Positions 759 to 60,820 of a stretch of DNA of 64,000 nt are shown here, piece after piece. The notes under the pieces are model-generated. The model saw only the letters and a list, made by a program, of their open reading frames with translations. It made no database searches and was not told the origin of the DNA. The stretch is from contig JBLDXI010000019.1 of assembly GCA_047495785.1 (NCBI GenBank), positions 3,534,001-3,598,000 of the forward strand. Reading direction: 5' to 3'. A program made the translations under genes and the position numbers. This stretch comes from Lepidodermella squamata (taxonomy: Eukaryota; Animalia; Gastrotricha). Each line of letters begins with the position of its first letter. Positions within the stretch are counted from its first letter, which is position 1.

Positions 759-2753
759 CTACTGGCGCATAATTTGATGTGTCCGAAAGGGTCTATCCAG
801 ACGAGGTTTTCTTACCTAAGCCCTGCAGACCTAAATAGTTACTGGACGATTTATGAGCAAAAAGATCAGCTTGTGCCTCCAGCTAATCAGACTAATGGTA
901 CAGTACGACTCTCAATTATTAAACCATCGCTCTGGAACAAAGCCGTGAGTAAATTTGATTGCGTTGCTGCCAGCGTATTGAAGATCTTTACTGCTAGAAT
1001 TTTAATCTGAGCGATTTCTATGCTGAGGTTTTACTAACTCCGATTGTTAGCACCGGATATCTGTTGGTTGTTATCTCGGATAATGCGGCTATTGTGAGGC
1101 CTGACGCTACGGGAAATTATAAATTGACTATTGACAATAACTTCGGTTTAGAAATGAATTCAACCTCAGGTTTGTTGGAACGCCAACTTTTTGATATTAT
1201 AATTCACTTCGCTTGTACCAGGTCTCACGGTATTGATACCTATGCGAAATTATTTTCCGAATTATTACACTGGTGAAGAACCCTGGGATTTTGGATCCTA
1301 CGCTACAGTCAACTTCAAAGGCGGAAATAACCTTTGCATGTATGGATCTTTTCAATACTACTGCTTTATGCAGTGCAACACATCGAACGCTTGTTTCACC
1401 CCAACTGACGTGTTCCTTTCAAGCTATATGACTTCGACATTCCTTTTGCAAGTTAGAGTTCGAGACAAGGAAGTTAGCATTGACATATGCCGCGACAATT
1501 CAACAGCCTGCACTCGCATGTTTGCTAAGACTATCAATCACAATTTGAACTTCGCAAATATGAACGCATCGCTGGGCATACTTTCATCTTTATCATACGT
1601 AGAAATTTCGTCAATCAAAGTTTGGAATTGCGCGATACCTTACACAGGAACAGGATCGGTTGAAGCACTGGCAACTATGACTGCCGATAAATTACCTGAG
1701 AGTGATAAAGGCTTGGCAACCTTTCTACCCCCTTCCTCTGGCCTGTCAACGTCTGATTGGTCTTCGTGCTCCACAACTTGTGGCATCGGTTTTAAATGGC
1801 GACTTATGTCGAATGGCTCAAAAGAGAGCCAACAGTGCTCGAATTCAGTTCGATGCCCGGCCACGGCGGAGGAGCAATCGCGTGGGGTCGATATGATCTT
1901 CTCGCCCGTTCCAACTATGGACGGTTATTTCAAAGCTAGGAGGGCGATCAAAGTAACCCTGGCGAAGAAAGTCAGTGAAATCTGCGCGAAAGGCTACTCG
2001 AAATGCTGCCCGGCTTACACTGCAGGCTCAACGAGCCCTACTTTCAATTACGTCGATGCCGATGATTTGATTGATTCGAACTACGCCAATACCTCGCTGA
2101 AGGCGAATGGTTGCTGCTTCAAGGTTACGATACTTATCAGCAAGACTACGCCAACTAAATTTTGCGAGGCTGGAGGAAAGCTGAAATCAGCCAGTCGGAA
2201 GAAGAGAGCGGCTAGTGATACCACCCTGATAAGTCAGGCTGATCTGAGCGCGGTGATTGCAGATTCAGAGTTTAAGAATGCGCTGTCGACTGAGCTTGGT
2301 TATTCCGTGACAACGAATGCCTGCTTGCCAACTGAGATTCGATGCTCAGGCGAAGACCCTCTTCTAGTCACTCCGACGCCGCAATCAGCCCAGTCTTCAT
2401 CTCAGTCTTCTCAATCAGTGTCATCGTCCAGTGGGGATTCCGGACTGAGCCAAACAACTATAATTATCATAGGATCAGTTGTAGGCGGAGTTGTAGTGCT
2501 TGGAGCAACCATTGGCCTCATTGCGTACTTCTGCTGTGTCAAGAAAAAAACAGCTAATAAGATAGCCTCCTCACCCGAGCCGTTGCACCCAAGCGATCGT
2601 AGAATTTCGACAGGGGTTGGAGCGGATGGTTGGTACACGAATCCCAATGCGGGAGTTTATGCCCCTCAGCTGGCTCCATCCAATGGAATGCCGGTTCAGT
2701 TCGCCGGTCAATATCCAATTCATTCAGAGAAGCCTTACGGCGATAATTACTAA
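759..2753 (+). CDS. Membrane glycoprotein paralog 1 (5'-partial): last lectin-like domain, TSP1-like motif, Cys-rich RKKR domain, TM, tail
   Basis: Exons 759-944, 998-1169, 1222-2753 join in frame through GT-AG introns of 53 and 52 bp. Motifs FNLSDFYAEV, WSSCSTTCGIG, SRKKR, TM IIIIGSVVGGVVVLGATIGLIAYFCC, tail PIHSEKPY. Upstream exons lie outside the window. Confidence 0.9.
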
Positions 2754-3638
2754 CCCTGCCGTTGAAAAACAGGTTTTAAAGTTCAATATGCATCATTATA
2801 AACAAATTTTCCCTTGATTACGGCGAGATTTCCTGTGAGAAAGTTATGGTTCAAGTTTGAAATTCTACACTGATCCTGCGTGTTTCTTTCATTGAATAAA
2901 ACCGAGTGGTGATACAGAGGTTTATGAATTCCCATAAGAGCAGGCAACAGCGAAACAACGCTGCCAGGGAAATATCCTTTCTTCAAACTTCTCGCTAGTA
3001 TTGACCCATTTCAGCAAATTTTCTTGCAATTTACCGTCATTTTTCGAAAATTTCACGCTGAGTGGCCGAATTTCCCGCGCACCAGGTTTCGCATGTTTTG
3101 CAGCCCTCTTAAAGTTGAAAGGATCTAGACTCAGTATACAAAATGAGGATGTAGTTTTTTTATCAATTATTTTAACCTAATTAGGTGAATCATTGAAATT
3201 GTGTCGAATAGCCCCCGTTAGGGGGGCGGCATAGTGGCGTGTGCTGCTTTCAGACGAGCTGTAGTGGCTGTAATAGGTTTTGTATTTATCTGAATATCGA
3301 TCGAAATCCTGGGTTGGCAATTTCTGTCCAGTCAAGTTCAATACTTCAGCTCTCATACAATTCTCTTGCGAATATTGAAAAAATAGGCAGTCTATTTCGA
3401 AAATGGCTTTTTCAAGTTTAAACTCACGTACCTCTCTCACCTCCCAAAGCCCCTTGAGTGGCTTAAAATGTGGTTTCAATTTTATATAATCAATTGGTAG
3501 TCAAGCTGAAAACCAATAAATAATTCAGATCGCTGTTGTCGATTCTTGTGGGCGGTAAAACTGAACCTCGAAATCAATTAATACCCGAACAAAATGCGAA
3601 CCTCCACGCTCGGACACGACCTGCTAAAATCTATTGAA

Positions 3639-6600
3639 ATGCGACCTGCAAAGGCTTGGAGTTTGGCAGGGCATTGTCTTATCACTCTGGTTCTATCGCT
3701 GCTGCATGTGACGTTTGTCGAATCACAGACTGCCATCTCTTGCACAGCTCCGGTCTTCCAACCGCAATACTCTTATACTGGGTTGGAGTCAACAAATAAT
3801 TGGACATTTTTGGACCCGTCTTCGTCCAATTCAGATAAAATATCATTTGAGTATTCAACAGCCAATAGTTATAGGGGCAGTGTTGGGATGCAGAGCTTCA
3901 AAGTAAACGCCTTTTTCCAATATAATGGGAATGATACTTTTCTTTTTACAGCCATTCACGTTGGACAATTTTCTATCCGAAATAACGATGCAAGTCAATG
4001 CATCCACCGATCAAAAAATAAATCCAGGATTCGGGTTCTTTTTGACAAGCCTTGGTTTTCAAACTGTAGCTTATTCACTAAGCTACCTACCATATGCGAT
4101 AAATTCAAACATAAATATTGGTATAAAATATCTGTTTATGGTTTTATTATTTCATCGCGGCTTTTCCAGGACTAACTATTCTGGTGTTAAGCGAAAACGA
4201 CACAGTTCAAGGCGCCTGGTTTGCTGATCCAGATTCAACCAAGTGGGAAAACCTAACTGTAGGAAGCTGCGAACGTGCTGAATGGTGTTGGATCGGCTCG
4301 AAAAATCAAATTAGCTCGTTCGTGAATAACCGAAAAATAACGTGGAAAATTCGGCTCAACCTGGATAAGTTGACTGTGGAGGCGTGCGATGTTGATACCT
4401 CGACTTGTCTAAGGACTCTGGACAGCGTAGTGATGCCATCTTCTTTCCAGTCGTATTTCGGGAGTATGGACACTTACCTGATGCTCGCAGCTTCCACAGG
4501 CATGGCGATAGACGTGTACTCGGTGAAAACGTACACTTGCGGAACGGCAACAACAACGCCAGCTCCGGTGGTGAGTAGTTTCGAAAAAACGTTCATGTGA
4601 AACATTGACCAATTCTATTCTTAGCTGCAACCCCGCGGTACAAAGTGCCAGAACGGCGCGTTTCAGTCAAAGTTGTCTTTTCAAAGTTTGCCAGACGTGC
4701 CTGGTAATTGGAAACTTAACAGACAGATGCAATCCGCTGAACGGGTCGAGGATTCGAATTCCATACGACTGACATACAAATATTGGGGAACGGGTGGAAT
4801 GTGGAGCATAGAAGTACGTTGTTAAGTTCAATGGAACTTTACGAATCTTATGAAATATGACCGGAAATAATTGATAAATGGGGTTTGACATCGTGAGTTT
4901 TGATGCCACTTTCAAGATGTATTAACGAGGAGTCGAATGGTATAAAAAGGTGGTTGATAGTCATCAGGGTTGCTGAGAAAATATTAGGCTTCAAAGTTTA
5001 CATGCGAAAAATGCTAATTTTAAAAAATGCGCACTAAAAATGACTTTTGATAATAATGATAAATTCTCATGATATTTTCTTGAAGTGAGGAATCTCGCCA
5101 GATATTTAAAAAAAAAGCTGTAGTCTCTACTTCAACGTGAATCATTGACACTTTGCAGAGCATGTCTGGGCTTTTCCGTGTTTTAAGAAGGATGGGAGCA
5201 TCCTATGGGCCTGAAATTCAAAAATTTAAAATCCTCAACAACAACTGAGTAAGAGCATATTGGAACCCAAGAATCGTACTTTTTCAAGTGAACACACTTT
5301 CTGCGAAAAAATTGGGACTCGACAATACCCCTTGTTTGAGGATCCTACTCCTCGCGCTGCGTCAAACTGCTCTTAAGTCCTCAACTATCAACTATGCCTT
5401 ATAGCATCGACAAGCGAAAATAATTTTTTTGACAAGTCATATCGAAAATGTTAAGTTCTTGAAACCTTTACTTTGCATGCCGTTTCAGCGATTCACACTA
5501 TCCGATTTCTACCTGGAATTTGTGGCGTCGACAACCGCTAGTAGTAACGGCTACCCGAGTCTCGCCGTCTTCATTGCAAACAGCGCCTCCGTAATGAAAA
5601 CCAACGCGACGAACCAAGCCAGTGACGGATTTTACGGTGTAAATAAAAGCACTACTCATGGTCTGGTGATAAACTTCCCGCTCATGGACCGGTCCGAATA
5701 TTACGAATCGATTTCGGGCAATTCATTCCCGACAATGAATTACATCGACAGAGTAAACAGGCGAAATTCAATGGGTAATTACTTTGACGAATCGTTCGAT
5801 TGCGGGCTAGCAGACGCTTGTTTCAAGGCTAAGCAACACTTCATCCAGTCATACCTGAGGTCAAAATCCCTCTGGCAAATTCGCGCGCAGAACAACCAGC
5901 TCACCGTCGACATTTGCCGATACGGCACAAGTTACTGCGCCCGAGTTTTCAACAACGTATCGCTGGATATGGATTTGTCATCCGCAAGCAATTTGTCGCT
6001 AGGTATCGTCTCGACCGGCCTGTTAGATATTAATTTCGCAGTCGAAGTCAAAGTTTGGTCGGTGGGTGTTTGGGACTGCTCTAAAACCAGCGGAACATCA
6101 AACAGCAATGCTGCGCTAATCAGCTCGCCATCATGTCCGAAAGTTTTGGCTCAGTCTCAATACTCAACGACGGATTACACTGCTGTTGAGAAAAATTGGG
6201 TCTATGATCTGATGGATTATTATGTTTACGAAGGTTTTACTTCATTACCGTTGGGCATTTCGGAATCGTCACACTCGTCGAAAGTGACATCATTTGCCGC
6301 GAAAACCGTTAGTTTTCACCATGATTTTATAACAAATGTCACCACATTTTGATTCAGGCTTTTAATTTGGATGATTTCTACATCGAACTAGGCATTGGTC
6401 CATTGAACAAGGACAGATTTCAATCACAATCAAATAGCCAAGTGTATGGTGGATTTGGATTGTACATTACAAGCATCAGCCCTGAAAACTTCCAAGCTGC
6501 TTTGGATGAAGATGACTGGAGTAATAATTTGGGTGAGAGCGTTTAATCTTGTTGAATTTAATAGGCTACTCGATTGCTCCGTACAAGGGCTTATTCTGTT

Positions 6601-9067
6601 AGTTTCATTTGAAACTAGCAGCGTCTACGGCGGTTTTCTCGGACCGAATATCGACTTCAAATGGGGCTCGCGATTACGCTTGCCCTGTGGAGAATTCGAA
6701 TTATGTTGGCAGAAATCGCCGACTGTAACAAGTGCCTACTTGACCAACCGCATAGTTACTTGGAAGTTCCGGGTCAACCTGAACAAGATCAGTGTTGTAG
6801 CATGTGTTGCTGATACAACCGATTGCTTCATGACCTTAGAAAACGCGACTTTACCATCATCCCTTCAGGCGACGTTCGGTAGCTTGGATGTCTATCTTGC
6901 TGTCGCATCATTCCCAACAACATCTCTTGAGTTGTATTTTGTCAAAACTTCGGACTGTGGAACCGTCGCGACGCAAACGGTGGGTACATGATACTGTGGC
7001 TTTTGATAATCCCACGCCTAAATTCCGATTTCAGCTAAAACCGCATGACTCAATGTGCCCAAGAGGCGATTTGGTGCCAGAACTTTCCTATCAAACGTAT
7101 ACTGATTTCGCTAAATATTGGCAATACTACAACTCGAAAGCAACGATATCTCAGGCGACAGGAAAGGTCATGCTGACTTCGTCCGCCACAGGAACGGGGA
7201 CAATGTGGAGCAAAGCTGTGAGTTTTGATTGATCGTTTGCAATCTAACTTGATGCTTTCAACTGAATACAGAAATTCGCCATGACAGACTTCTACATAGA
7301 AGCTGTTGTATCCATGGCTTCAACTAGCTTAATACCGGGGGCAATCTTATTTTCAATAATCAACAGAGACTCAATTCTAACATCCGGCTACGGCGGGGAT
7401 AATATCCTTGGCTATAACAAATCTTCAAACTTGGGTGAGTTGATTCGAAAATCTTGACAAAATGTTTTTTCAACTGATGAAGTTACCCAGGCCTCGCAAT
7501 CTATGTGCAGAACTCTGGAGTATTTTATTCAAACAGGCATGATCAAGACTTCACAGACACAACAATCGACATTAGAGATTCAAATGATTCGGTGTGTTAT
7601 GATTACTACGATCCTGAAACCCAGCAATACTGCGCCTTGAAATGCTCAAAAGCTGATTTGTGCCTGACGAATACGACTCAAGTCTTCAATTTAGCCTACC
7701 TGCGAGGGACATCGCTGTGGCAAATCAGAATGAGCGGAAAAGATATTACAGTTGATGTTTGCCGCTTCAATACAACCATTTGTACTAGAATGGTGAGTGG
7801 AACAATTCAGCATAACTTGGATTTTATGAAAAGGGACATGTCCCTTGGACTTGGCTCTGTCGCCATATGGCACTATAGTGAAAACCTTGAAACACTCAGC
7901 GTTAATGTATCCTCAGTCCAAGTGTGGAACTGTTCCTACTCTTACAAAGGAGCTGAATCTGTTGAAGCTCTGGCCACAGCTACGGCTGACAGCCTTCCGG
8001 AATCTGACAATGGCCTAGCAAAGCTAATCCCGCCTTCGAAGGGTCTATCAACCTCGAGCTGGTCATCTTGCTCCACAACTTGCGGCCTAGGTCTTCAATG
8101 GCGACTACTAGCAAACGGGTTGAAAGAGAGCCAGCAATGCTCAAATCAAAATCGATGCCCTACAACTGCTGACGAGCAGGGAAAGGCGGTGGACATGCTG
8201 ATCTCGCCAGTTCCAACAATCGATGATTATTTGAAAATGAAGAAGTCTATCAAGGTCAATTTAGCGTCGAAGCTTAGCGATCTCTGTGCAAGAAATTACT
8301 CTAGATGCTGCCCTGGTTACACGTTTAGCCAAATCCCGAATTTCAAATGTGTTGAGGCGGGTGATTTGATCGACTCGAACTATGCTGATACTTCGATGAA
8401 GGTTAACGGGTGCTGTTTCAGGGTAACTTTGACCCTGAGCAAAACGGGTCCGACCAAATACTGCGATGCCGGCGGGACTTTGAAATCTGGGCGTAAAAAG
8501 CGGGCAGTCTCAGAATCTGTCGCGATTAGCCAATCAGATATGATTTCGATATTATCGGATACGGACTTTGATAAGGTAATGTCTGCTGCAATAGGTTATG
8601 CTATTGATTTCAATGGATGTCTGCCGAGTGAGACGAGATGTTCTGGGGAGGATGCAACTACTACTACTACTACTACTACTACTGCTGCTACATCTTCTAC
8701 TGCTATTAACAGCGCTACTAGCAAGCCAGCTACGGCAACAGGGATAACTGCGTCATCCAGCGATTCTGGGTTGAGTCAGAGCACAATTACTATTATCGCT
8801 GCCGTGGTTGGAGGAGTTGTTGGGCTCGGAATCATTATCGGCATTTGCGTTTATTGCTGCTGTCTTAATAAAAACAAAGTCGCCCATCAGCCTGACTCAG
8901 TTCAGCGCAGGAGCACTGTGTCGCTAGTCGGAGCAACGGATTGGTACGACTCCAAAGGAGCGTATCAAAATACGGCCAATTACAAGGCTGGAGGCTTTTA
9001 TGACAAAAAGCCTCTGCCTCTCCCAGGCTTTGGGCCGATTCATCCGAAAAAACCATATCCTTGCTGA
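3639..9067 (+). CDS. Membrane glycoprotein paralog 2, apparently intact, ~1443 aa, four lectin-like domains
   Basis: Exons 3639-3902, 3952-4120, 4170-4570, 4625-4813, 5489-6307, 6358-6532, 6588-6979, 7035-7217, 7272-7434, 7491-9067 (4332 nt). Phases are consistent and no stops were seen. Signal peptide (CLITLVLSLLHVTFVES), poly-Thr stalk, TM helix. Alternative ATG at 3594. AATAAA at 9144. Confidence 0.9.
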
Positions 9068-10821: not shown

Positions 10822-12152
10822 GGGTGCCAACTTTCATACATAAATATGTATGAAATTTTTCCCTTTCATACATATTTATGTATGACAAAATTAACTTTCA
10901 TACATATTTATTTTCATTAAATTCGAGCTGAAAACATTAGGGAAATGCCAGATGACTAGATTTCTGTTTATGTGAAAGAAAAACGGGGTTCCGAAAGCGT
11001 AGTCAATTTTTTCCGCATGAAAATGGTTATTGGGGAAGCGCAAGGGCCAAAAAATCGAACTTTGTAGAAACCCGAAACTCGAACTACCCTAACCCTAAAC
11101 CTTAACCGTGAGACCTAACCAAACCCTAAACCTAACCCTAACCCAAATCTTTCTTGGTACCACACAATCGTTCGGCGCCCTGGACTCTCCTTCCGCTGGC
11201 GTCGTGCCAGCTACCTCGCCCTCGTCCGCTCGATCGCTTCCTTCGGCTGCGTCGCCTTTTCGTCCGCTGCCAAGCATCAGTTGCGCCGCCTCGACGTCCT
11301 GCAGAATAAGTGCCTGCGCGCCATGCTTAACGTACGCCTCGCTGACCGTGTTCGTATCACCGAACTCGAGCGGCGCTGTCGCCTGCCTAGCCTTTCAGAG
11401 TTTTTCTGCCAGGTTCAAGCCCGCTACGCAGAGAATGCTTGCAGATATGTCCTGCCACTTCGCGAGCAAATCGAAAGCGTCCGCTTACGTCCGCCGACGA
11501 CGATGAAGTCACCCGTAGTCGTCCTCCATGACCGCCTGTCGTCGGGCCCGCTCCCTGTCTTTGTGACTTAGTCCACCCTTTCCCCTTTATTCCTTGTATT
11601 CTCCGTCCTTCTCTTATCCTCTGTTCTGTCTCTGTCCGACTTTCTCTCTATTCCTTCCTTCTGTCTCTGTTTCTTCCTTCTCATCATTCCTGTTCATGCT
11701 CTTCTCTTCATTTCCGTTGCTCTATGTCTTCTGAACTGTTCTAGCACTTTCGTTCACTTTCCTATCTACCCGCACCCGATAACACTTGAGCTTCTGATAA
11801 ATCCTTCCTTTCTGCCTCCCCAATAGTGTCATCCGCGAACTGTCTTAGACAATCGCGTGTCCTCTGTGTGCCGGCGCCTGGTCTGACATATGTATTTTCA
11901 TTGTTATTATTTTCTGCCTTTAAATTTAATTTGTATGTCAACTAAGGACAAATAAAACAGATTTTCGTTTTCGTTCGTTCGAACCCGAACCCTGGCACCT
12001 AACCCTAACCCCCAACCCCAATTCCTAATCACTGCTTGGCTAAAAAACACGATTTTATGAAAAAAAATATGTATGAAAGTTAATTTTGTCATACATAAAT
12101 ATGTATGAAAGGGAAAAATTTCATACATAAATATGTATGAAAGCGCACTTCG
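10822..12152. mobile_element. Foldback/MULE-like non-autonomous element with long palindromic TIRs
   Basis: ~80-bp inverted arms built from the near-palindrome TTTCATACATAAATATGTATGAAA (10831-10910 vs 12065-12143). 9-bp direct repeat TTAATTTTA at 10813-10821 and 12153-12161. Internal degenerate TAACCC tracts. Confidence 0.75.
11147..11910 (+). mobile_element. 5'-truncated non-LTR retrotransposon (post-RT C-terminal region plus pyrimidine-rich 3' UTR)
   Basis: Frame reads SYLALVRSIASFGCVAFSSAAKHQLRRLDVLQNKCLRAMLNVRLADRVRITEL, the YxxxxRxxxxY/FG...LxxxQNKxLR pattern typical of I/Jockey-group ORF2 C-termini. Stop at 11571. Boundaries approximate. Confidence 0.75.
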
Positions 12153-15100
12153 TTAATTTTATTCATTACCCGAAAGATGCTCGAAAAATATTTGGTCGCA
12201 GCTGTTATCGTCCTGCTTCAAGGAAAGGCAGCCTGGTCCCAGGCGACCATGTGCTCCGGGGCGGTTTACCAACCGCAGTACTCTTCGACGAATTGGACGG
12301 CTGACAGCAAAACCTACGAAGTGTATCCCGAGCCCAAAAGTCTTAACGACAGGCTGCCTTTAAACGGCGACCAGACAGTCAATGTGGCCTGCCTGAATGT
12401 GAGTTCCAGTTTTATCAGCATTTAGTTAGAGCTTTGAGCGAAATTTCGTTAAAATTCAAAGGCTTTTCCTATTCTTTAATAAAAATATGTTTCGTGCATT
12501 AGCCATTCACCATAGACGACTTCTACGCTGAGATAACAGTGCAGATGGGAGCTTATTCAACTAGCGCGCCTCATCCCGGTTTCCAGATTCATTTTACGAG
12601 CTACTATTACCACTCCTAACTATGGAACAGGGGGCTATTATGACATGGGTCAGTTCACGCAAATGAGGGGCTTAAATTTGACGCTGTAATCCATAGGTTT
12701 GAGAATAATAATATCACCTAAGTACAACGCGGTTGTTGGAGGTTGGTTCGCGGTTCCTGATGCGACTAAATGGTTCAGCCAGGGGGAAGATTCGCCTTGC
12801 GGACAATTCGATTGGTGTTGGCAAGCCACTTCATCTGAGATGAGTTCTTATCTGAGTGGAAATAAGGTTACTTGGAAGCTTCGAGTGAGCCAGAGCAGCC
12901 TGACGCTCACGGCTTGTTTATTCAATACAAGTAACTGCATGAAAACACTTGAAAAAGTGGCACTGCCCACGTCATATCAGGCAACGTTCGGCACCTTGGA
13001 TACATTCCTGGCGGTTGCAGCCTATACGAATAAGTCCATCGACCTTTTTTCGATTTCCGTATGGGACTGCACCTCGGCTGCAACATCCACGCCACCCCCA
13101 CAGGTGAGTCCAGAATCTCCAGATGCATCATTTTGTTCTCAATCCTAAATCTTGATAATTGTTGAATTTTGTTTTTTATATTATACAGCAGCTTCTACCG
13201 AGGGGTTTAATGTGCTCGACGGGCGCTTATCAACCGCAGTTCGCTTTCCAGAGCTTGAGTGATGTCGCGTGTCGCGAACAACTGGGTTCGTCTTTCGGAG
13301 AAGTTCAGCACTTCATTTGATGGCAGTAGCATGAACGATAATTTTCTCTACGATCCATTTTCAATCGCTAGGTCAGGCTCGGGATACGGAATACTGAATT
13401 CGACTTCGGTAATTTGAAAATATTTGTTTTCTATAATTTCAACGCCTTTCAACGCCTTTCAGAAATTCAACTTCACCGATTTCTTTCTGGAAGCTGAAGT
13501 TGAAGTCACCAATGAGGTGCTGTTCAACATCTCGATATTGAAAAATTCGGAAAGTGCTTCCCCGATCGGTAACTTGGGCTTGGAATCTAATTTTACCTAT
13601 AAATGTTGGCTACTGCTTATCCCTACAGGGTTTAAAATATCTGTACCGCTCGAGGTTCAGGCCTCTTACGATAAGGAAATATCTTTTGCTGCCAATTTCT
13701 TGAGCAACGCTGCTGATGTAGCTAAAACGAAAGATTGCAACGCTTCAGATGCCTGTTACCGACCGAACGAGCGTTTCGTTCAATCGTTTTTGCGCAAAAA
13801 ATCAACATGGCAACTGCGCATCAAAGGCAATAGCCTGGCGTTGGGCGTATGCCGAACTAGTACCAACTCTTGCGCCTTGTTTTTCAACACGACCATTAAC
13901 CACGGCATGGACTTCTCGCGCATGAATCTATCGCTTTTGCTGTCCTCTGATGATAAATCTGGAGGATATTCTAATGTTCGAATAGCTTCGATCGGCATTT
14001 GGGACTGCTCCAAAACCGCCATCGCAGTGGCTACTAGCCTTTCGAAAAATGCGCCTCTGAAATGTTCTAACGCAGCCTTTCAGAAGCAGTATTCTATTAC
14101 TGAAATTCCAATAACAGAAGATAATTGGGCATACTCCGACCCAAACTTCTTCAAGTCAAGCAATTATTTCTCTTACCTGCCATTCGGTAACAATCGGATC
14201 GTTAGTAAACAAGTAAGCTATCTACGGAAAAACGTTTCCGAGGACAAGTAATTTTATGAACTACACTCTCATTTTGAACCTCTGAAAATTTTGGGAGAAG
14301 GAAATGAACAAAAACCACGTTAATTTCAAGTAGTCAATTTCAATGACACTTCAAATTGATGTGACGTAGATAGAACGCCGCACTAAAAGAGCCTTTCGGA
14401 CACCAAAAACTGAAGCCAGACTAATAAGGGGCTAAGCTCAACGTTTATGAATCTAATCTAACATCGAATGAGATTAATCATACTGAGCACCGAACCAATA
14501 GATGTAGGTATCGATTCGTAGGCCATTTTTGAATCGGTGTAATTAAACAATATTTTAGCAAGATAGTCATTTTATTTCATTAAGATGTTTTACCGTTCGG
14601 GGCTATACGCAGGATTCGCTGAAAAGTTCGTTCAATTAGTAGATTGAGGCTTACTAAAAAACTATGAAGTCAAAGTCGACAAATTTTTGCAGGGAACTAC
14701 CTCGATAGATGACACTTATTCTATCGAAAGTATGAGTTCAAAGAGTAAACGGTTCTGAAGCTACAGCTACAGGCTCACCTTTCAGGTGTATGCTTATCCC
14801 CCCCCCCCCTCCCCTCCCCAACTTTTCTCGCTTCGGTTTCAAGTCAAAATGACCTTTTGGCAAAAACAGCACACATTTTTTCCATCCCTGGCAGCTTCGG
14901 GATCGAAGATCGCACACTAAACTTGTGATAAGGCTCATCGGGTGACAGGCTGATAATGCATTTGGCAATGAAAATTAAAAATTACTTTTTCGACTGCGAA
15001 TTAGGGAGAAACTATATATAATTAAAAGTCATCTATTTGCGTGGCTTACGTTTTTTGCATAATAACGGAGGTTACATTTTTGCTGAAAAAAATTGAGGCG

Positions 15101-15257
15101 AAGAAGCTAAAAAATGAACCCTTTTGGAATCGAACTGCTAACCTTTTAATGATATCGCCATAAAGAACTATGACAAAAAACCACTCGGCCAAACTTCCTT
15201 GCTCATTTACTAATATTAAGAAGTCTTTATATGTGTAAATAAAAGCCCCACACCTGT

Positions 15258-15296
15258 CCGTATTCCGAATAGCTATAATAGCTATTCGGAATACGG
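15258..15296. repeat. Perfect 19-bp-arm palindrome (1-nt loop)
   Basis: CCGTATTCCGAATAGCTAT-A-ATAGCTATTCGGAATACGG. Confidence 0.95.
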
Positions 15297-17385
15297 GTGC
15301 CATTCGAATCAGAACCCTTTTAAACGTGTAAAAAAGCCTGACGATGGCCACTTTGTGGCCGAAACGTCGTACGAATATGACAGCACACCGACAGGACCAT
15401 TTTTTGACCCGGCGGCCCGTTTTGAATATCGCGCGGTAACCAATGTAAACAATTTTTATTAAATCAAAAAGTTCAATCAACATTAAATTTAAATTTTATT
15501 TTGAATAGAAATTTAATTTGCGTTAAAAAAACATCGGAAAAAGAGCGCGAAATTTGAATTGTTCGTCGCTTTCCGTTGTCACTTTTCCAAAGGGGACGTG
15601 GGAATAAGAAAAATTGCAGAGAAATCTTTATTTTTATTCAAAACGGATATTATTTTTGTTCTATATGCATGCAAAGTTTGGTAAACAACAAAGATTTGGT
15701 TTTGGTTTTGGCTTTGGTTTTGAGAAGCACTTCCTTTAACAATGCAGATCAAAATTTTCAGCTTGAGTGTTCACTCTTTTCATTTTTCTCCTTGGTCAAT
15801 TCACCGTGTCATTTGTCATTTCACAGGTTCTCACGCTTAACGATTTTTACACTGAGATCACTGTGACATTTTCGCAGTACGATGACAAATCAAATCCGCA
15901 CGCAGGAATCGGAATATTTTTAGCAACAAAGTCTTCAGGATCTTCCGACTTCGATGGTTCACTTCAAATCGGTAACCCCCTTTGGCATTCCCTATTTGAT
16001 TTGAACTTGTGACATTTCGCGCAGGAATGAGCTTGCTGATCTCACCTGCGAAGAAAAGCGTATTCGGTGGTTGGTTCGGCCCTGACACAAACAAAGAAAA
16101 ATGGGACAGTCGTTCGAATGGATCATGCGGATCTTTTGAATGGTGCTGGCGAGCTTCGCCAGAGTTGGTGAACATTTACTTGAACGGGCGGACGGTTACA
16201 TGGAAACTGCGCGTGACAACAACAAATCTCACCCTGGATGGTTGCGTTCAGGGCTCAAACGATTGCTTCCGGACTCTTGATGGCGTAGCGCTGCCGGCAC
16301 CTTTCCAGTCGATGTTCGGCAACGTTGAGACTTATTTCATATTGTTGACAAATCCATTCACCCTATCCGGCGTGGATTATAGAACTGCTTACGGTGAAAC
16401 GATGAGATCCAGATTGTATTCTGTTCTTGTCTGGAACTGCGCTACAGAGGCAATGGAGACAAAACCATCCTTGGTGAGCTAATCATTTATGATGCATGCT
16501 TCCAACAAGTTTAGTCTACTCTCAACCATGCGATTAGATTAGTGCTGAAGTGATTACCGTAGTTACCGAAATACTAACCCGGGCTTATACAAAAATGATA
16601 CCTCGAAAAATGGGGAAAAGTAGGCTTCTATTCAAGACTAGGCTTCTATTTGAGATAGGCTTATGCAACGGAGACCTGACTTTACTTTCTGTCTTTCAAT
16701 CTCAAAACGCATCAATTTTTTTATTATTAGTTATTAGCTAGGTCGTCTAATAGCGGAAAATTAGGAATAATAAGGAATGCTTCAACTAAAATCATCGTAA
16801 ATCGCAGATTATTACATATCTTCACGAATTTTTCGTTTTTAAATACCGTTCAGCGCAGCAGAGCACACGCGCCGTAGTAGCCTAGGCTACTATTCGAGAT
16901 AGGACTATGCATCGTCGAATTTCCATTTACCTAGGCTTTTAATCGAGACAGGCTTCTAAACGAGTGGGGGCTTATATTTCGCCCTAGGGATCAAATCTTG
17001 GCAAGATCTTAGCTGAACTTGCCAAGATCCATCAAAGATCCGTGCACGATCTTGCACAGATTTGCAAAGATTTTGGTTCAAAGATCTTAGCAGATAATTA
17101 TTCAAGATCTTTATTGTTATTGAAAGATCTTCCAAAGATGACACTAAGAACTGCTCAGATTTGAAGAATCTTTCATGTTATTAAAGAATTCTTGTTCTCA
17201 TCTTTCCAAATCTTGGCCCGAAATTTTTACTGGCGCCCACGGAACCGCACCCGAATGTACGCACCCAGGTATAAAACACGACTAGAATTTCAGAGTTGTC
17301 AATTTTATTCAGGAAAAAATCGATTTTCGGTATAAAAAAAACCCGATATAAAACACGTGTTCCGCCAAGCACGACATTAATATTT

Positions 17386-46748: not shown

Positions 46749-49700
46749 TTCAGAAAATTTACCTAAAATCACGAAAAATGTGAACAATCGTTTGCAATGG
46801 TAATATCGGCAACGGGCTGTGAAGAAAAAATAGGATATATCGTCACCATGAAGGAAATATGAAGTGTGATTATATTCCTTATTTTGACACGAGTTGCTCT
46901 TTCTGCTAAAAATGCGCTTTATTACCATCAAAAACGATGACTTATTTATCGAATATTAGACGTGACAAGTGACTTCGGTCCTACTTTTTATTCACAGGAG
47001 TTTGAAAAGGAAACAACTTACTTATAATCGTTATTGCTCAACGCCCAATTTTCATTTGTCTGAGAAGGTGGAGTAGAGGTTGAAATCATTTGTCAAGTTT
47101 CTTATGTGAGCAACGAAACATGGAAGTCGCGTCTATCGTCGCGTCTATCGTCGCGTCGCAATCGTCGCGTCGAATAATTAATTACCTGCACATTCGTCCG
47201 ATTCTCACTCTTTCACCAAAATCGTCAATCTAATTGTGAGTGGGTTTGCGGGCCGTAACTTCCATCGACTACGTTATAAAAATGAATCTCCCGTACTCTC
47301 GTGTACGGTTTAGACGAACCGTACACAGTCATTACGGCTGTCACTCCTGTACTCAGCATGTACGTTGCATTCGACTGTACTTGGGCGTACAGCTCAATGA
47401 GCTGTACGCCATGATACAGGAATGAAACGCTGTACATCTAATATACAGCCTGGTCAACTGTACTCAATCTACAGTCGAATGAGCTGTACTGACATTTACG
47501 GCCATCAAAACTGTACCAGTTTGTACAGAATAAATATACTGTACTCTTGTGTACACGAGTTTTTTTGCCTAAAGTGCTGGTTCTTCCGCGCCACGAACGA
47601 TATCGTCGTTAACATTGTTTTCAGCCGCTAAACCTTTTTTTCTCTTAGAAGTTTTCATATCGAAATTAACGATACTGTCATCTTGAGATTGGCTTTGCGA
47701 TGCCTCAAAATAGTTGTGGTCATCGCCAACCGATGATTCCACCTGCTTTTCAGATTGCTTTTGACATTGCAAACCAATCAAAGAACTTGCTCCGCCTTGC
47801 TTTCGCAATTACATGCACAATGACGCAATACAACCATATAAGATTTACTTACGCTTTCCATTACTATTTCGATTTGCCATAACAACCTTTTACCAGACAG
47901 CTGCCACTGTATCAGTAGGTAAAATGAAGCGGTAACGAAGCAACGATGCGAGCTAAAATCACCGCGGGGGATGACACAAAACACACGCGCACCACGTCAC
48001 GTGCCCCACCTGCGTCCTTAATAAATAAGTGTCAACTAAAGAATTCACTATTTTTAAAACCAAAACATAACTAAAACGCATTTCAATCAACTTTAATCCC
48101 TATTAGGCACCTCTAAATATTGTTAGCTGCATGTTTCGCCTAGAGAAATCAAGCAATTTTCGCACATCTCCCAGAACCCAAGATCTTGCAAAGGCATACA
48201 TCTTTACCGAACACTGCAAAACTCCTTCAAGACACCTGGCTAAACAGATTCAACGCGCCGAACTTACAACGACTTGACACAGATCCGTCGAGGCGCCTTG
48301 CTCACCATTTTTAACAAGGCGCCTGCAAAGACACTTGCTCAACATAGTCATTTTTCAGCTTTTTTGACCAATGATCCGCAAAGTCACCCTAGGTGACCCC
48401 GCGGCCTCCTGCTCCAGCAAAAAAACAAAGATCTTGCGTGATCACAAGAGGTCGTTCCAAAGACTTTCCTCATTTTTATTCTAGGGTACGGTATCTAAGG
48501 TTGCCATAGTAGGCAAGATGTAAAGTACGGATGATAATTTGTTTAATAACTCGGTAACCATGAGAAATTTCTTGGAGCGGGTATTTCTCCAGTCGATAGA
48601 TCTAGTATGTTGTAAACTTTCCTAAAATCCTCGTCAGATTGGGATAACATTCAGGATTACTCCACTTTTATCCAGTGTTTTACCGATTTCCTAACAGACC
48701 GATTATTTAGAGAAGAAATCAGCTGAGCTGTTAAACAGATTTCATTCCAACTTTGTTCTATTTGTTTCAATGAGGCGCCGGTTCAAGATTTGCTTTGCAC
48801 AAGAGGATCGCCACAGCCAAGTTTATCCTACCAATCTCCGCCGCAGCTCAACTACTGGGACACTTATTCAAACATCTTCGATAATGATATTTATTCGAAT
48901 GACCTCGCCTTGTCCGAATCATCTCGCAAAAATAGCAGCGTTACACTTATGCATCCTTATGGCAAAGTATGCATGTGGAGCAAAACTGTGAGTAATTTGC
49001 TACATTCCGTAACTTTGAGTTATCGAACGATTTGTTCAATAGAATTTCAACCTGGGCGATTTTTATGCCGAAATAGTGCTGACGCAATGGTACGGAGGCG
49101 TCTTAATTGTCGTTACCAACACCCCAGCTGTTGTAAGGCCAGATTCGAAGGGTAAATACAAATTGACCCCAGCAAATTTGTATGCATTTGAAACTTCCTC
49201 GAGTGCAGGTAATTATTGTGGAACTTTTTCCAACCCAAGAGACGCTGAATCTTTCGATTTAGGTCTTTATATTTACATACCATTTTCTGCCAAGCCGAAT
49301 GCTGCTACAGTCAACTTCAAAAGTCTCTCAAACGCAAATTGCTCGATAAGCGAATACATCAACTTCGAACCAGAATATTGCTTGTTTAACTGCAAGCTGT
49401 CTGATGCCTGTTTTAAACCGACACAGCTGTTCATAGAAACGTTTATGCGGAAGCCATTCACGCTAAAAATTCGAGTTCAAGGAAAGATGGTAACAGTCGA
49501 TATTTGTCGCGCCAGCTCGTCGTTTTGCTCTCGCATGTTTGAGACGTCCATTAACCAAAAAATTGATTTTTCCACTATGAACGCGACATTGGGTATAATC
49601 CCAGTTTTTTCTGAAGTCGAAATATCGTCAATCAGCGTAATGGACTGTGTTATTCCTTACACCGGAGCAGCGTCTATCGAGGCCTTGGCAACCATGACAG

Positions 49701-51690
49701 CTGATAAATTACCTGAAAGCGATAAAGGCCTGACAGCTTTCCTATCCCCAACTACAGGCCTGTCAACAACCGCTTGGCCATCGTGTTCTTCAACATGTGG
49801 AATCGGCCTGAAATGGCGATTGTCAAATGGCTCGAATGCGGAAAGCCAACAGTGCACAAACCCGATTCGATGCTCGGCTTCAACGGAAGAACAATCGCGG
49901 GGGGTCGACATGATTTTTTCGCCGGTTCCGACTTTGGACAGCTATTTCAAGGCTCGAAAAACGATCAAGGTCAACCTGGCTAAGAAAATCAGTGATTTAT
50001 GTGCGAAAAACTTCACGAAATGTTGCCCAGCTTACAATGCCGGGTCTCAAACTCCGAGTTTCAGCTATGCGGGTTCTGACGATTTGATAGACTCAAACTA
50101 CGCCAATACTTCGCTGACGGCAAGTGGCTGCTGTTTCAGAGTGACAATTCTTATCAGCAAAACTAATCCGACTAAGTTTTGCGAGGCTGGCGGAAAGCTG
50201 AAATCAGCCAGTCGGAAGAAGCGAGCGTCTTCCGATTCAACGTTGATAAGCCAGGCGGATCTCAGCTCGATAAACTCAGATCCTGATTTCACCAAGGCGT
50301 TGTCATATGAGTTGGGCTACTCAATCAACATGAAGAGTTGTCTACCAACCGAGGCGAGATGTTCTGGTGAAGATTCCCCGCCGGCTGTGTCTGTTTCTCA
50401 AGGTTCGAGTAGCAGCAGCTCTGATACAACGGGATTGAGCCAAACTACGATCATCATCATTGGATCGGTTGTTGGAGGGGTTGCTTTCGTTGGAATTTCG
50501 GTCGGGCTGATCGCTTATTTTTGTTGCGTTAAAAAGAAGGCAACAAGTCCAAACAAAGTATCACCACCTGCCAGTTATACCGGTGGTCGTCGAATGTCGA
50601 ATGCTGTCGGAGCGACTGACTGGTACTCTAACCCCAGCGCGAACGTTTACGCGCCCCAATCTTCTCCATCAGCCCTACCGATGCAATTCGCTGGGGAGAT
50701 GCCGATTCACTCGCAGAAGCCTTACAGCAATAATTACTAAACGATTTGTTCAAGCTGGGAGCAACTAAATTGAATCTCATAGTGACTGGCTCAGTGCCTT
50801 ACTTGACTGAAGCTTTTATGATCCGATTGCGGTTTGTTTTGTTTTCTCTATCGAAAGAGCGTCTTTTAAAAGCGGGTTGCAGGGTCTGATCTTGGATCCT
50901 ACAGCTGCCAGAGGTGAAAACATTTAGTATTTGCCAAAATGACTCGTGATTTCAATCGAAATTTTGATGATTTTCTACAAAAGCACGCTTCAAAAAAACC
51001 TCTAAAACCATTTTCGTTTTCCTGTCCTGATTAACCGAGCCCGGGGGAATGGAGGACGCCCCCCTTTTCCCTCAAACTCATAGAGAGCAAAATATTTACA
51101 AAACAAACTCATAGAGAGCAAAATATTAACAAAATCTTGAGAAATCAATAGCGTTAGCTAGGAAATAAGCGGGTGTTCTCTCTGATCACTTCGTTCTCTA
51201 TGCGAACTATGAAACTTGCTTATTCATCGATCAACTTTCTTGTTTAGGTTTCAGTAAAGCCTCTTCATGGCCAAAAATTCTGAGCTGTCAGAAGAGTTCA
51301 CAAATAAAAAATGAATATTAAGGGCTTTTTGGGATGAATGTCGATTTGAACATCTGACTACCTCTGAATGAAAAATAACGAAAGAATGACACCTGGAGCT
51401 TGTGAAGTATTTGCCCAGAATATATATCGACTCTGTGGGATCTTCTCGGCCCCAGTTTTCGCCCCACGATATCAACTTGCCGAGTCGTCAAGGCCGCTTG
51501 ATTGAAATTGCTGTCTTTTCGTGAATCAAATATCAATGAGTTACCGGAATTAGCGCACTTGGCTTTGCGCACACAGCAAAATGATGATGATTGCGCACAT
51601 AGCAAGTTGCGCACAACAATTCTCGAAGTGAGAGAATTCAGAGTTCAATATGCACAGCCAGGAAAAATCGGAAAATCGAAATATTATATA

Positions 51691-51781: not shown

Positions 51782-51789
51782 GTGTGTTA

Positions 51790-52904: not shown

Positions 52905-52919
52905 TAATAGTTTCCTATC

Positions 52920-56663: not shown

Positions 56664-57486
56664 CTGCCATCAGACAGATAATAAGACATAATTATTCGCT
56701 AGAAGTTCTCGCGAGGGTTTGCTCGATGTTTTCCCGGTTCAAATGCGCTGATTCAAATTAGCTGTTTTAAAAAGCGCAAGGTCGTTTTCGCTGCAGAAAA
56801 CACGTGGTTTATAAATTGCCAACATTAATTTCGGTAATTTGTTATAATTTAATGTTAGGAAAAAATACAAATGGCGAACTGTAAAATAGGTATTAGAGAA
56901 AAAATTGCGAAGAAAGTTTGCGGCCAAATTGCGGTAAATTTCGGAACACTGGTTGGGATTCAGGGATTCGGATCAGCGGCAGGGATTATCACAGAGTTAT
57001 CAGGGATTATCACAGGGATTCGGAGAGTTATTTATAGTTGTCGATCTTGTCTAGCTACTCCAGCTGGTTTTGACCTCATTATTGACGATTTAATAATGGA
57101 TAAGTATGTATTTGACAAAACAATTCGCACATAAACTGTTGAAGATGCTACGAACCGATCCCAAGGTCAGAAGCAGCCAGAAGTGGCTCCAATGGAAGAA
57201 AATTGACTCGTCTTCGGAAGTTTCTGTGCGGTCCACCTGGTTTTTCTCTCTACTCCACTCCGCTCTCCACTCGCACGAACATGGTTTAGGCGAGTGGAGT
57301 GCTTTAGGTAAACTATTAGCTACCTGAGCGCGCTCTCAAGCTACCGATCTCAGGCTGGCTTCTGCATAATTAATACTTCAACGAAGGCATAATTAGCAGT
57401 GCATTAGACACCCCCGCTCTAGAACAAAAAATTTCTTTGTGATTCGCGAGCAAAATTTCTCATTGTTGAATGCGCGAAATACTGCA

Positions 57487-60400
57487 ATGTTATTTTCAAT
57501 TGTGGCCGTGGTTCTTTTCTCATCCAGAGTCGCAAGCCAGTCGATTAACTGTCGCACACCTCTTTTGCAGCCGCAATATACGTTCGAAGATGTGACGTCT
57601 CGCAACACCAACTTTGACTTCTACCGCTCGGAAGTTGTAAGCTCGGCGAACCTCAATTTTACCCGCATCAGTTCGGATTTGCGGGGAAACGGTATCTGGA
57701 CAAAAAAGGTTAGATTCACCTCACCAAGTTGAAGTTCGTACTTTAAACCGAGATTTCACATAGCCGTTCGTTCTGGACGATTTCTACGTTGAAGCTACTG
57801 TGAAGATGCAACCCATAGCCAACTTGTCATCAATTCGTGGTTTTGGGTTTTTCCTAGCCAATGAGTTGGCTGTAAACCGCGAAACACCAAAGAAAAGCGA
57901 ATTCTCAGTCATTAGCAATAGGCAAATCGGTATATACCCCATGCTAGTATTTCTTTCATTGAATTGAGATCTTTCAGGCATAGCAATGTTTTTCACTCCA
58001 CTGGGAAACGGTGTTATGGGCGGCTGGTTTGCACCTAGTGCGAACCTTACAAAATGGACGAGCTGGATTAACAACAGCTGCGACTCTCTGGAATGGTGTT
58101 ACCAAGGTTCGCCGCGTTTCTTCGTGTCCTTCTTCGCAAATCGTTCGGTCACTTGGAAGCTGAGGTTTCAGATGAACGTGTTGTCAGCGGACGCGTGTTC
58201 AAGTGAGTCGTCTAGCAATTGCACGCGTGTTTTCGACAACATTACGATGCCCACGTCCTTTCAATCGACCTTCGGAAGCATCAACACGTACCTAGGCATG
58301 ATTGGCAGTGTTTACAACACTGAAGCCCTTATCGACCTTTACTCGATCAAAGTCTGGGATTGTGGCACGCCTACTGCTACGCCGGCACCTCAGGTTTGTT
58401 GAATTAGCGGGCGACGGAATATATAAAATCTCACTTTCCGATTAACTTCTAATGTATGGGAAAAAAATAAGGAGTAGGAGTTGATGAATAAACACAAAAA
58501 TTCAACTCATAGTAAACCCAGAATAGATAGAAAAATTCAACGAGAAATTTGTGAACGAGAACTGAAATCAAAATTTGAGAGGACTAAAAATGCTGAACTG
58601 ACGGAAACCCTGAATAAAAGAATTCATTTGAAACAGCTTGCTGCTCGGAATCTCTTGTGCAAAGGTGGAACTTTCCAGTCTCAGTGGTCATTTCAAAGCT
58701 CCTGGGCTGATTTAGCGGGAAAATGGGATATGTACTACGTCCTTGTTCAGAACGCCAGTCAGCCACCGCAAATGCCTGACGCAGTGAGGATGCACACTTT
58801 AGGTGTCAGATCAGCAGCCATGTGGAACAAAAACGTAAATTTTAAAAGACAAATTCATTCTTGAGTTAATCATCTTTTATGAAAAGCGCTTCACTCTGAA
58901 CGATTTTTACATCGAATTTGGCCTTGAAAACAGCGATATAAATTTCTACCAAGGTTTTCTGCTCTTAATAACTAATAACGCTTCAATCACGCGGGAAAGT
59001 GGTTCGCTCAATACAACCTACAACTTCGGAATTAACGGCGGTCAACATACCGGTGAGTTGCTCATGTTGAAGGAATAACTTTCATTAGTCCATTTTCAGG
59101 TCTTTCGGTTTACATTCCGCCTGTTTATTCGTCGGCTCCTCAGATTACTGTTAATCTTCAAGCTCTCAAAGGAGTGCCGAGATGGTGGACCGCTGACTCG
59201 TCTGACGCTTACCAAAATAATTCAGTGCTAATTAAAGAGGCCTACATTAAAGCTCGCTCGCTATGGCAAATTCGTTACAGGAACGGAATTATCACCCTTG
59301 ATGTTTGCCGATTCTGTTCGAACTTCTGTAGCCGAATTATCAGTAGCGCGAATATCACAAAAAACTTCGATTTCAGCAGCGGGAATATGATCTTTGGGGT
59401 GGCTACAACGGACAGTAGTCTTGCTAACCCTACTCCAAACGTCACCTTGATGTCCATTGGGGTTTGGGACTGTTCTACCACCAACTCTACAACATCAGGT
59501 TATTTGTATCAACCCACATGTTCGGTAGAAACCACGACAACAACAACTAGCTCAACAATTACAAAAACCATTACCACTTCGACGACGACTGCAACGACCA
59601 CGACATCCTCCCCGGTCGCCACCTCGGCCACCACCTCGGCCACCGCCACGGCGTCAACTAGCTCGACTGCAACGACAACATTGAGCTCAACTTTGCCCTC
59701 AGCAACAAGTGTGAAGGAATCTACCGTGTCTACTCAAACACAAGCGCTGAGTTCGCCGACATCCAAAGGCGTAGGTACCCAAAGCACAACTTCAGTCGCG
59801 GCTTTCAAGGGTTCAACTTCAGTCAAAAGTCTAGCCGCTACAAAGGCTGAGGACTTGACCGAGGGAGATGGCTATCTAAAAAAGTGGTTGCCACCATCAG
59901 TTGGTCTCTCAGCGAACGTCTGGTCAGCTTGCTCCACTAACTGCAGCATCGGAGTTCAGTGGCGACTTACCTCGAATGGCTCAAAGGAATACCAACAGTG
60001 CAGCTCAACCACCCGATGTGCTACAACGACAGATGAAGCAACTCGGGGCGTCGATCTGCTTTACAAACCTGTGCCAACAGTTGATGGCTATTTCAAAATC
60101 AGAGGTTCGATCAAAACCAAGGTTGCGACAAAACTGAACCCATTCTGCAGATCGAACTTTGCAAAATGTTGCCCTGGTTACACGAACAACAAAACACCGA
60201 CTTCAAACTACGTCGAGGCTGATGAGTTGATCGATTCAAACTACGCGAACACGTCGAAGAAAGCCGATGGTTGCTGTTTCAGAATCACGTATGTCCTCAG
60301 CAAGACTTCTACCAGTAGATTTTGCAGTTCATTCGGAGATTTGAAGGCTGCTGGTCGCAAAAAGCGGGCCGCTGTTGATCCGGCTTCTATCAGTCAGGAA

Positions 60401-60820
60401 GACTTCACGAAGGTGATGGAGGAGACTGAGCCAGATCTTGAAAGCATGATGATGGCTGAATTCGGTTTCTCTTCGAAATTTGACAGCTGCTTGCCGACTG
60501 ACAACCCATGTGTGAGTGAAGATGGGATTGTTGGCGACGGGAATGCACTTGGTTCTAAAGGTAACAGCACTTCTTCATCAACAGGCAGCAGCACGGGCGT
60601 CATCATCGGTTCTGTTTTGGGAGGCGTGGCCTTCCTCTTGCTGATCGGAATAGTCGCCTACTGCTACTACACGAAATCAAAAAATAGGAAGAAGACTTGT
60701 AAAGTTGATCATGAAATCAGGCGGACGCCTTCATCTGTTGGGAGATCGCTTGACTCTAACAATGATTCCTATTTGAAAGCTGTTGCTCTCAAGGCCAAAG
60801 CTAATGGATATCTTCGATGA
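57487..60820 (+). CDS. Membrane glycoprotein paralog 4, apparently intact, ~962 aa, two lectin-like domains and a long Thr/Ser stalk
   Basis: Exons 57487-57708, 57764-57929, 57978-58393, 58637-58834, 58887-59052, 59100-60820 (2889 nt). Signal peptide MLFSIVAVVLFSSRVAS, WSACSTNCSIG, GRKKR, TM VIIGSVLGGVAFLLLIGIVAYCYY. Confidence 0.9.

Follow-up and report, generated by a model that had tools for sequence, protein, structure and literature searches.

Tandem genes for putative type I membrane glycoproteins with lectin-fold units on a predicted cleavable SEA-like base in the gastrotrich Lepidodermella squamata

Introduction

The L-type lectins known from animals are cargo receptors with a single domain that act early in the secretory pathway. 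Furin cuts the SEA domains of Notch2 and human GPR126, whose two halves remain associated afterwards (PMC6954182). Our study examined a 64 000-nucleotide stretch of the Lepidodermella squamata genome (assembly GCA_047495785.1, contig JBLDXI010000019.1, here C19, positions 3534001–3598000, + strand; hereafter the window) in which likenesses to both designs come together. The window carries four tandem genes, which are probably members of a lineage-specific family of type I membrane glycoproteins, in which tandem lectin-fold units stand on a constant, predicted cleavable base (the cassette) composed of a thrombospondin repeat and a SEA-like domain. This genome holds at least 70 copies of a lectin-fold unit that are unrecognizable by sequence, arranged in tandem and predicted to lie at the cell surface. 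A preliminary description, made from the DNA letters alone, had proposed a tandem family of receptor-like proteins here, and its claims are taken up below beside the results that bear on them.

Results

Organization of the gene cluster

Hidden Markov models (HMMs) of the distal unit, of its N-terminal segment (N-segment) and of the cassette were run against both strands of the window, and the 121 Mb genome assembly was searched for paralogs. Eleven distal units (E values of 1e-28 to 1e-51 for the main parts) and four cassettes were found, all on the + strand, with no unit and no cassette on the - strand. The reading frames are open in 11/11 units and 4/4 cassettes, without a stop or a frameshift. 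The conserved C-terminal half lies in four long + strand terminal exons (1233–2753, 7505–9067, 49076–50740 and 59174–60820), and the six motifs by which the preliminary description had linked four paralogs (WSxCSxxCxxG, VDxxxxPVPT, CCPxY, DxLIDSNYA, GCCFR and RKKR) are present in all four.

Two unit subtypes alternate, in the order A-B-A-B (four units) in genes 1–3 and A-B (two units) in gene 4. The coding plan of a unit is an N-segment of ~60 aa, a middle piece opening with F-x-L-x-D-F-Y-x-E and a C-part closing with V-W-D-C, the last two being merged into a single exon in some units. Phase-0 introns delimit the unit blocks, and introns in this genome measure ~50 nt. The features of the four genes are as follows.

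756–1637, +: gene 1, last (fourth, type B) unit, by HMM matches; N-segment 756–914, middle piece and C-part 998–1637
1653–2357, +: gene 1 cassette (alphaTSR-like repeat and SEA-like domain), cassette HMM E 1e-110; RKKR 2196–2207
2358–2753, +: gene 1 Ser-rich stalk, transmembrane (TM) helix (2454–2525) and cytoplasmic tail to the stop codon
3639–9067, +: gene 2, complete, as modelled from GT/AG signals, frame and a paralog-guided splice search
3720–4546, +: gene 2 unit 1, type A, by HMM match
4625–6085, +: gene 2 unit 2, type B, by HMM match; main part 5483–6085 is the folded sequence
6098–6964, +: gene 2 unit 3, type A, by HMM match
7035–7939, +: gene 2 unit 4, type B, by HMM match
7955–8653, +: gene 2 cassette, the folded sequence; RKKR 8492–8503
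8780–8845, +: gene 2 TM helix with GxxxG, followed by a Cys/Lys cluster and a tail with RRxS/T
12177–16473, +: gene 3, 5' part, signal peptide (MLEKYLVAAVIVLL...) and units 1–3, by HMM matches and splice signals
12231–13076, 13192–14014 and 14042–16446, +: gene 3 units 1 (type A), 2 (type B) and 3 (type A)
16474–48774, +: putative transposon-filled 32.3-kb intron of gene 3, between units 3 and 4, by splice signals
48775–50740, +: gene 3, 3' part, unit 4 (type B, 48775–49654), cassette (49670–50374; RKKR 50213–50224), TM helix (50444–50515) and tail
57487–59479, +: gene 4 signal peptide (MLFSIVAVVLF...) and units 57529–58369 (type A) and 58628–59479 (type B)
59480–59815, +: gene 4 mucin-like spacer, rich in Thr/Ser, separating its last unit from the cassette
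59816–60820, +: gene 4 cassette (59816–60523; RKKR 60356–60367), stalk, TM helix (~60596–60664) and tail to the stop codon

Gene 1 starts ~2.5 kb upstream of the window and its first three units lie there; the start of the family at position 759 in the preliminary description falls within the N-segment of its last unit. The modelled gene 2 opens with a signal peptide (MRPAKAW...) and has ten exons (3639–3902, 3952–4120, 4170–4570, 4625–4813, 5489–6307, 6358–6532, 6588–6979, 7035–7217, 7272–7434 and 7491–9067), separated by introns of 49–56 nt, except for one of 675 nt. A fifth paralog, 6.5–10 kb past the window end (C19:3604499–3608167), holds within one open frame of 642 codons a type B unit together with a Ser/Thr spacer, the cassette and a TM helix.

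Fold of the distal units

The residue skeleton noted in the preliminary description was recovered in the 11 units of the window and in an alignment of 44 units, in which C145, C152 and C199 are invariant, W131, R134 and W197 are kept in 91–98 %, two further cysteines in 86–92 %, an F is also nearly invariant and the F-x-L-x-D-F-Y-x-E start is conserved. Three disulfide bonds per unit are predicted. Folds and searches used unjoined exon pieces. With the 44-unit alignment, AlphaFold2 (AF2) modelled the main part of gene 2 unit 2 as an all-beta structure with a predicted local distance difference test score (pLDDT) of 82.2 and a predicted template modelling score (pTM) of 0.81. A Foldseek comparison of this model with the PDB placed ERGIC-53 at the top (E 4.6e-6, template modelling (TM) score 0.58–0.62), with VIP36, Emp46p/47p, a legume-lectin-like domain from Entamoeba and legume lectins ranking next. 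VIA-align returned ERGIC-53 with Z 14.2 (root mean square deviation (rmsd) 2.9 Å, 166/201 residues) and VIP36 with Z 13.5, the galectins reaching Z 12.9 across just ~130 residues. The model covers ERGIC-53 residues 94–269, and the ~60 N-terminal lectin-domain residues left unmatched correspond in length to the N-segment exon. ESM language-model features also assigned the unit to L-type lectin clusters (0.93). Taken as a reading of the model, these results support a ConA-like beta-sandwich of the L-type-lectin (ERGIC-53-like) fold, which is the fold that the preliminary description had anticipated.

The sequence searches returned no lectin. None of the 44 units (0/44) matched a lectin Pfam family at E values up to 10, the window exons gave no lectin match against Pfam, a PDB sequence-profile search with the unit yielded nothing meaningful, and hhalign gave a probability of 0.8 %, that is, no signal, between the unit profile and an exon from the canonical L-type lectin of this animal. 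PF03388 found just two matches in the genome, both of them ordinary ERGIC-53/VIP36-type genes (C21:1.8466–1.8474 Mb and C55:1.1872–1.1878 Mb), and the exons read from the C21 gene have intact G-D-G and D-T-Y-S-N motifs. The sugar and Ca2+ residues of ERGIC-53 are D121, N156, H178 and D152/D155/D157. When the units were aligned by eye to the C21 lectin, they showed G-[FW]-[GA]-hydrophobic where the canonical protein has G-D-G-I-A-I-W, with F, W or S standing at the G-x-G strand in the place expected for the sugar-binding Asp by this correspondence; also by eye, the 44 units have no conserved D, N or H column after the GL-hydrophobic strand, at the expected Ca2+ loop. Given that the units match no lectin HMM and, by eye, do not keep the canonical sugar and Ca2+ residues, we claim the fold and do not claim lectin activity, and 'lectin' is applied to the modelled fold of the units alone. 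The earlier proposal of L-type-lectin-like domains is supported by their modelled shape and not by a sequence match.

The membrane-proximal cassette

The cassette alignment comprised 23 genomic paralogs and 233 residues, with a mean column identity of 57 %. The 12 cysteines and the R-x-K/R-R site are kept without exception (23/23), and the motifs of the preliminary description are invariant or nearly so: W36, C39, C43, G46, W49, P85-V86, C118-C119-P120-Y122, D140-S141-N142, G152-C153-C154-F155 and R180/R183 of the RKKR site. AF2 modelled the gene 2 cassette as one compact body (pLDDT 86.8, pTM 0.84).

Residues 1–70 of this model form a leading helix (16–24) and a short thrombospondin repeat (TSR) with four cysteines, and C39, C43, C62 and C68 are the only TSR cysteines in the 23-paralog alignment. 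The TSR core W-x-x-C-S-x-x-C-G-x-G followed by Arg is present, with its W36, C39, C43, G46 and W49 invariant and R50 nearly so, and it includes the O-fucosylation-type pattern C-x-x-S/T-C-x-x-G. Pfam TSP_1 matched the window exons under its cut-off (20.6, 19.2 and 12.1 bits versus 21.6; E 5e-4 to 0.23), and the Pfam scan of window exons and units gave nothing beyond these sub-threshold matches and TM noise. A PDB sequence-profile search with the cassette ranked the alphaTSR chains of the Plasmodium circumsporozoite protein (CSP; E 4e-5 to 9e-5) above ordinary TSRs, and structural comparison with alphaTSRs gave an rmsd of 2.2 Å for 7rxl_E by Foldseek and Z 4.5 with 31 % identity for 6b0s_C by VIA. 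The WSxCSxxCxxG motif, previously read as TSP1-like, is a thrombospondin repeat of alphaTSR-like type.

Residues 73–228 were modelled as an alpha/beta sandwich of ferredoxin-like type with the order beta-alpha-beta-beta-alpha-...-beta. The top VIA matches are all membrane-adjacent domains, namely PCDH15 MAD12 (Z 8.6), the IA-2 ectodomain (7.6), CELSR1 (7.0), CDH23 MAD28 (6.5), MUC16 SEA (5.2), Gpr126 (4.8) and dystroglycan (4.6), with RRMs next. The fold class and the position adjoining the membrane are clear in the model, and, with a top Z as modest as 8.6, kinship with SEA/MAD domains is suggestive only. Pfam SEA (PF01390) had no match in the window exons, the G-S-V-V-V autoproteolysis motif is absent from the 23-sequence alignment, and TM scores did not exceed 0.32 when the entire cassette was used for a shape search of the ESM Atlas.

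The RKKR loop (182–185) is the sole part of the cassette model with pLDDT < 50. The VIA matches cover both sides of this furin site, and the segment after the predicted cut supplies two helices and the last strand. The preliminary description had asked whether the RKKR domain is SEA-like, and our models agree, showing a ferredoxin fold in which an exposed loop carries the furin site. As an R-x-K/R-R site lies here in a disordered loop inside a SEA-like domain, furin-type cleavage should, by analogy with the systems cited above, leave two halves that stay associated.

Stalk, TM helix and tail

A Ser/Thr-rich stalk separates the cassette from the TM helix, which keeps G-x-x-x-G and is followed by a Cys/Lys cluster and an R-R-x-S/T...V-G motif. 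An NPxY-like motif (N-P-Y-Y/F) is present in the tails of many paralogs. Judged by these motifs, the tail appears receptor-like and may have a role in signalling or endocytosis.

Family size and remote relatives

At least 24 full cassettes were found in the genome, in several clusters on C19 and on contigs C13, C18, C42/C85 and C48, together with at least 70 lectin-fold units. Elsewhere in the genome (C13:2.96–2.975 Mb; C19:2.84–2.88 Mb; C48), the cassette carries other ectodomains, including Cys-rich GPCW-WN...NC repeat arrays, long mucin-like regions and a Pfam-unmatched beta-rich domain.

A profile of the unit C-part and cassette was searched against 1.84 billion representative proteins, of which eight matched at E ≤ 1e-3. 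All eight matched the cassette part, and the unit part had no match at this threshold. One relative, from Logan contig SRR23372229, has the order EGF-TSR-SEA-like-RKRR-TM (hhalign against the cassette, 97 % probability over 192 columns), and an uncharacterized sea-urchin protein (XP_054770649.1) has the order mucin-EGF-SEA-like-RRRR-TM (96 % probability over 108 columns). The remaining matches are short TSR arrays, among them a 4041-aa Sycon protein. A word-based protein search with the cassette region within an 871-aa frame found no match, one with the gene 2 terminal exon was swamped by low-complexity words, the same type of search with the SEA-like part of the Logan relative found only itself, and a feature search of the ESM Atlas produced no usable match for the SEA-like part. 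With remote relatives in a sea urchin and a Logan contig, the base is part of an animal domain family that has no name and is sparsely sampled. By these sequence comparisons, the cassette is not confined to L. squamata, and the lectin-fold units are orphans. The preliminary description had inferred a lineage-specific family and had not recognized its combination of domains as a described one; this held in that no close relatives were found among the 1.84 billion proteins and a literature search found no paper describing the combined architecture, but not for the cassette, which has remote homologs elsewhere.

Two of the matched sequences have further features. The 18.7-kb Logan contig has NIDO, VWD and EGF open reading frames (ORFs) upstream of the cassette relative, and may encode a MUC4/SUSD2-like protein ending in the cassette. 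In the Sycon ciliatum protein (XP_065193054.1, 'hornerin-like'), ten stretches match the linker and short-TSR part (E 2.5e-35 overall), and the protein may represent an array of alphaTSR-like repeats with four cysteines.

Evolution of heads and base

The distal domains had been described as strongly divergent. The heads evolve faster than the base, as the non-synonymous divergence (dN) of the unit was 1.4–2.6 times that of the cassette in every pair. Synonymous divergence (dS) was saturated in most window paralog pairs, so positive selection cannot be claimed; where dS was measurable, the cassette had a dN/dS of 0.10 and the unit one of 0.19.

Units followed by a Ser/Thr stalk were also found directly upstream, on the same strand, of ORFs for Cys-loop channel subunits (C55:0.57–0.76 Mb, C19:2.19–2.21 Mb and C24:3.27 Mb), which match Neur_chan_LBD (E 4e-10). 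A tree built from unit C-parts places the type B units of cassette genes in a single clade with a Shimodaira–Hasegawa-like approximate likelihood ratio test (SH-aLRT) value of 99, and the type A units of cassette genes cluster with the channel-linked units at C19:2.19–2.21 Mb (SH-aLRT 98). This grouping points to head shuffling between two membrane platforms. A tentative extension, which we consider possible and rather doubtful, is that a lineage-private recognition head was exon-shuffled via phase-0 introns onto both cleavable SEA-type receptors and Cys-loop ligand-gated channels. If so, one class of extracellular ligand would be read directly by an ion channel as well as by a receptor of the force or shedding type; to our knowledge, such a sensory design, with one head shared by both, is not known in animals.

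Gene 3 and intergenic sequence

The 32.3-kb block of gene 3 occupies the position of a 55-nt intron in gene 2, and its edges are a phase-0 GTGAGC donor at 16474 and a phase-0 acceptor at 48774 (GT/AG). Since these phase-0 splice signals are kept, gene 3 may still be a single gene. The block contains putative nested transposon sequences with ORFs on both strands, acidic or Ser-rich ORFs among them. A Pfam scan of ORFs from the block was uninformative; one of them, at 39377–40369 on the - strand, had a weak DUF1258 match. Two short ORFs, at 11108–11571 (+) and 63431–63964 (-), resemble by eye the C-terminal parts of reverse transcriptases of non-LTR (long terminal repeat) retrotransposons; both are intergenic and flank receptor genes.

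Discussion

We consider it likely that the four genes encode type I membrane glycoproteins of one lineage-specific family. In the proposed mechanism, a signal peptide would be followed by two or four units of alternating A and B subtypes on the constant base, and during its secretion the protein would be cut by a furin-type convertase at R-x-K/R-R, inside the SEA-like domain. Since this domain's final helices and final beta-strand would lie beyond the cut, the head-bearing and membrane halves should stay together. They would be held non-covalently, as in the SEA domains of Notch, GPR126 and mucins, until parted by force or by the binding of a ligand. This ligand, a protein or a glycan, would be bound by the fast-evolving lectin-fold heads; the base would serve as a general module for anchoring, shedding or force sensing, and the tail would provide a link to endocytosis or signalling.

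Several points weigh against this interpretation. The best SEA/MAD match, with its Z of 8.6, is barely above the aligner's usual background of 7–8. In the cassette model, helix alpha2 and the last strand flank the furin loop, whereas in MUC1, Notch2 and GPR126 the cut loop lies between beta2 and beta3, and a disulfide bond spanning the cut, if there is one among the cassette cysteines, would block separation of the halves. The unit was folded as its main part, leaving out the N-segment exon. The exon joins of the gene models are predicted from sequence signals, and gene 3 may be broken by the 32-kb transposon block instead of being spliced across it.

One alternative is that the proteins are true Ca2+-dependent glycan-binding lectin receptors, serving for example in pattern recognition of microbial or food glycans via the canonical L-type site. 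The best structural matches are indeed sugar-binding L-type lectins, and the tandem expansion, with heads evolving faster than the base, is like that of many immune receptor families. Set against this are the failure of all 44 units to match a lectin Pfam family, the fact that PF03388 finds just the two ordinary ERGIC-53/VIP36-type genes, and the by-eye alignment, in which the sugar-binding Asp is replaced and the expected Ca2+ loop has no conserved Asp, Asn or His column. This makes a canonical glycan receptor unlikely.

We regard as quite improbable that these are barrier or force-sensing proteins of transmembrane-mucin type, in which the SEA-like base does the work and the units, with no specific ligand, serve mainly as a scaffold of the glycocalyx or as rigid spacers. 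Such a role would suit the Ser/Thr-rich stalks, the genes at C13:2.96–2.975 Mb in which the base is joined to pure mucin-like ectodomains, and the remote relatives that combine it with mucin/EGF or NIDO/VWD modules. It accords poorly with the defined A-B order of the units and the purifying selection on them, and the presence of related type A units before Cys-loop channel genes suggests ligand recognition. That the cluster, or at least gene 3, is a decaying remnant of duplications and transposon insertions whose protein is no longer made is highly improbable: although gene 3 is split by a 32-kb transposon-filled gap in a genome with introns of ~50 nt, all 11 units and four cassettes are open, the splice signals are intact even at the edges of the gap, dN/dS is far under 1, and the cysteines and furin site are invariant across 23 paralogs.

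The preferred reading, of lectin-fold heads on a cleavable receptor base, would make the family a candidate repertoire for recognition in an animal lineage that has been little studied. The combination of a CSP-like short TSR with a predicted furin-cut SEA-like domain would carry the concept of a domain that stays together after being cut, as in mucins, Notch and adhesion G-protein-coupled receptors, over to a new domain family. As type A units also stand before Cys-loop channel genes, the genome offers a natural experiment on head shuffling between receptor types.

Comparison with known systems

The units share their beta-sandwich fold with ERGIC-53 (LMAN1), VIP36 and Emp46-47 (PF03388) and with legume lectins. 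By eye, they parallel the ERGIC-53-type lectins in a G-x-G-hydrophobic strand, FG, a GL-hydrophobic strand, W/Y-x-I/V-R, LP and D-I/V-x-S-V/I; however, they differ in having extra conserved cysteines and no HMM-level match, and by eye they do not keep the sugar-binding Asp or the Ca2+ loop. The L-type lectins known from animals are single-domain proteins of the endoplasmic reticulum and Golgi, whereas two to four tandem units, predicted to be at the cell surface, are found here. The plant L-type lectin receptor kinases (LecRK) are alike in their L-type-lectin-fold ectodomain, single-pass receptor form, tandem expansion and often degenerate sugar site, but combine one lectin domain with a cytoplasmic kinase, in place of the two to four domains, predicted cleavable base and short enzyme-free tail seen here; the origin of the present family is independent of theirs.

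The alphaTSR of CSP is likewise a short four-cysteine TSR with a preceding helix packed on it, and the likeness (31 % identity over 51 residues, rmsd 2.2–2.5 Å) is a short match that does not imply common descent past the general TSR family. It precedes a glycosylphosphatidylinositol anchor, whereas the cassette TSR belongs to an animal protein and is fused to a SEA-like domain. Transmembrane mucins (MUC1, MUC3/12/13/17 and MUC16) resemble the predicted proteins in a variable glycosylated ectodomain, a cleaved SEA-type module, one TM helix, a short signalling tail and tandem paralogs. They have long mucin repeats and autoproteolysis, in contrast to the folded lectin-type heads, predicted furin cut and TSR-containing base of the present family.

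The SEA/MAD domains themselves (MUC1/MUC16 SEA, Notch HD, GPR126 SEA, PCDH15, CDH23, CELSR1, IA-2 and dystroglycan) parallel the predicted arrangement of the cassette in having a proteolytic site inside the domain, which allows the halves to remain associated, and the cassette differs from them by six extra cysteines (C, CC, CC, C) and by two inserted helices. Notch and human GPR126 parallel the predicted processing, as each has a SEA-type domain that is cut by furin (PMC6954182).

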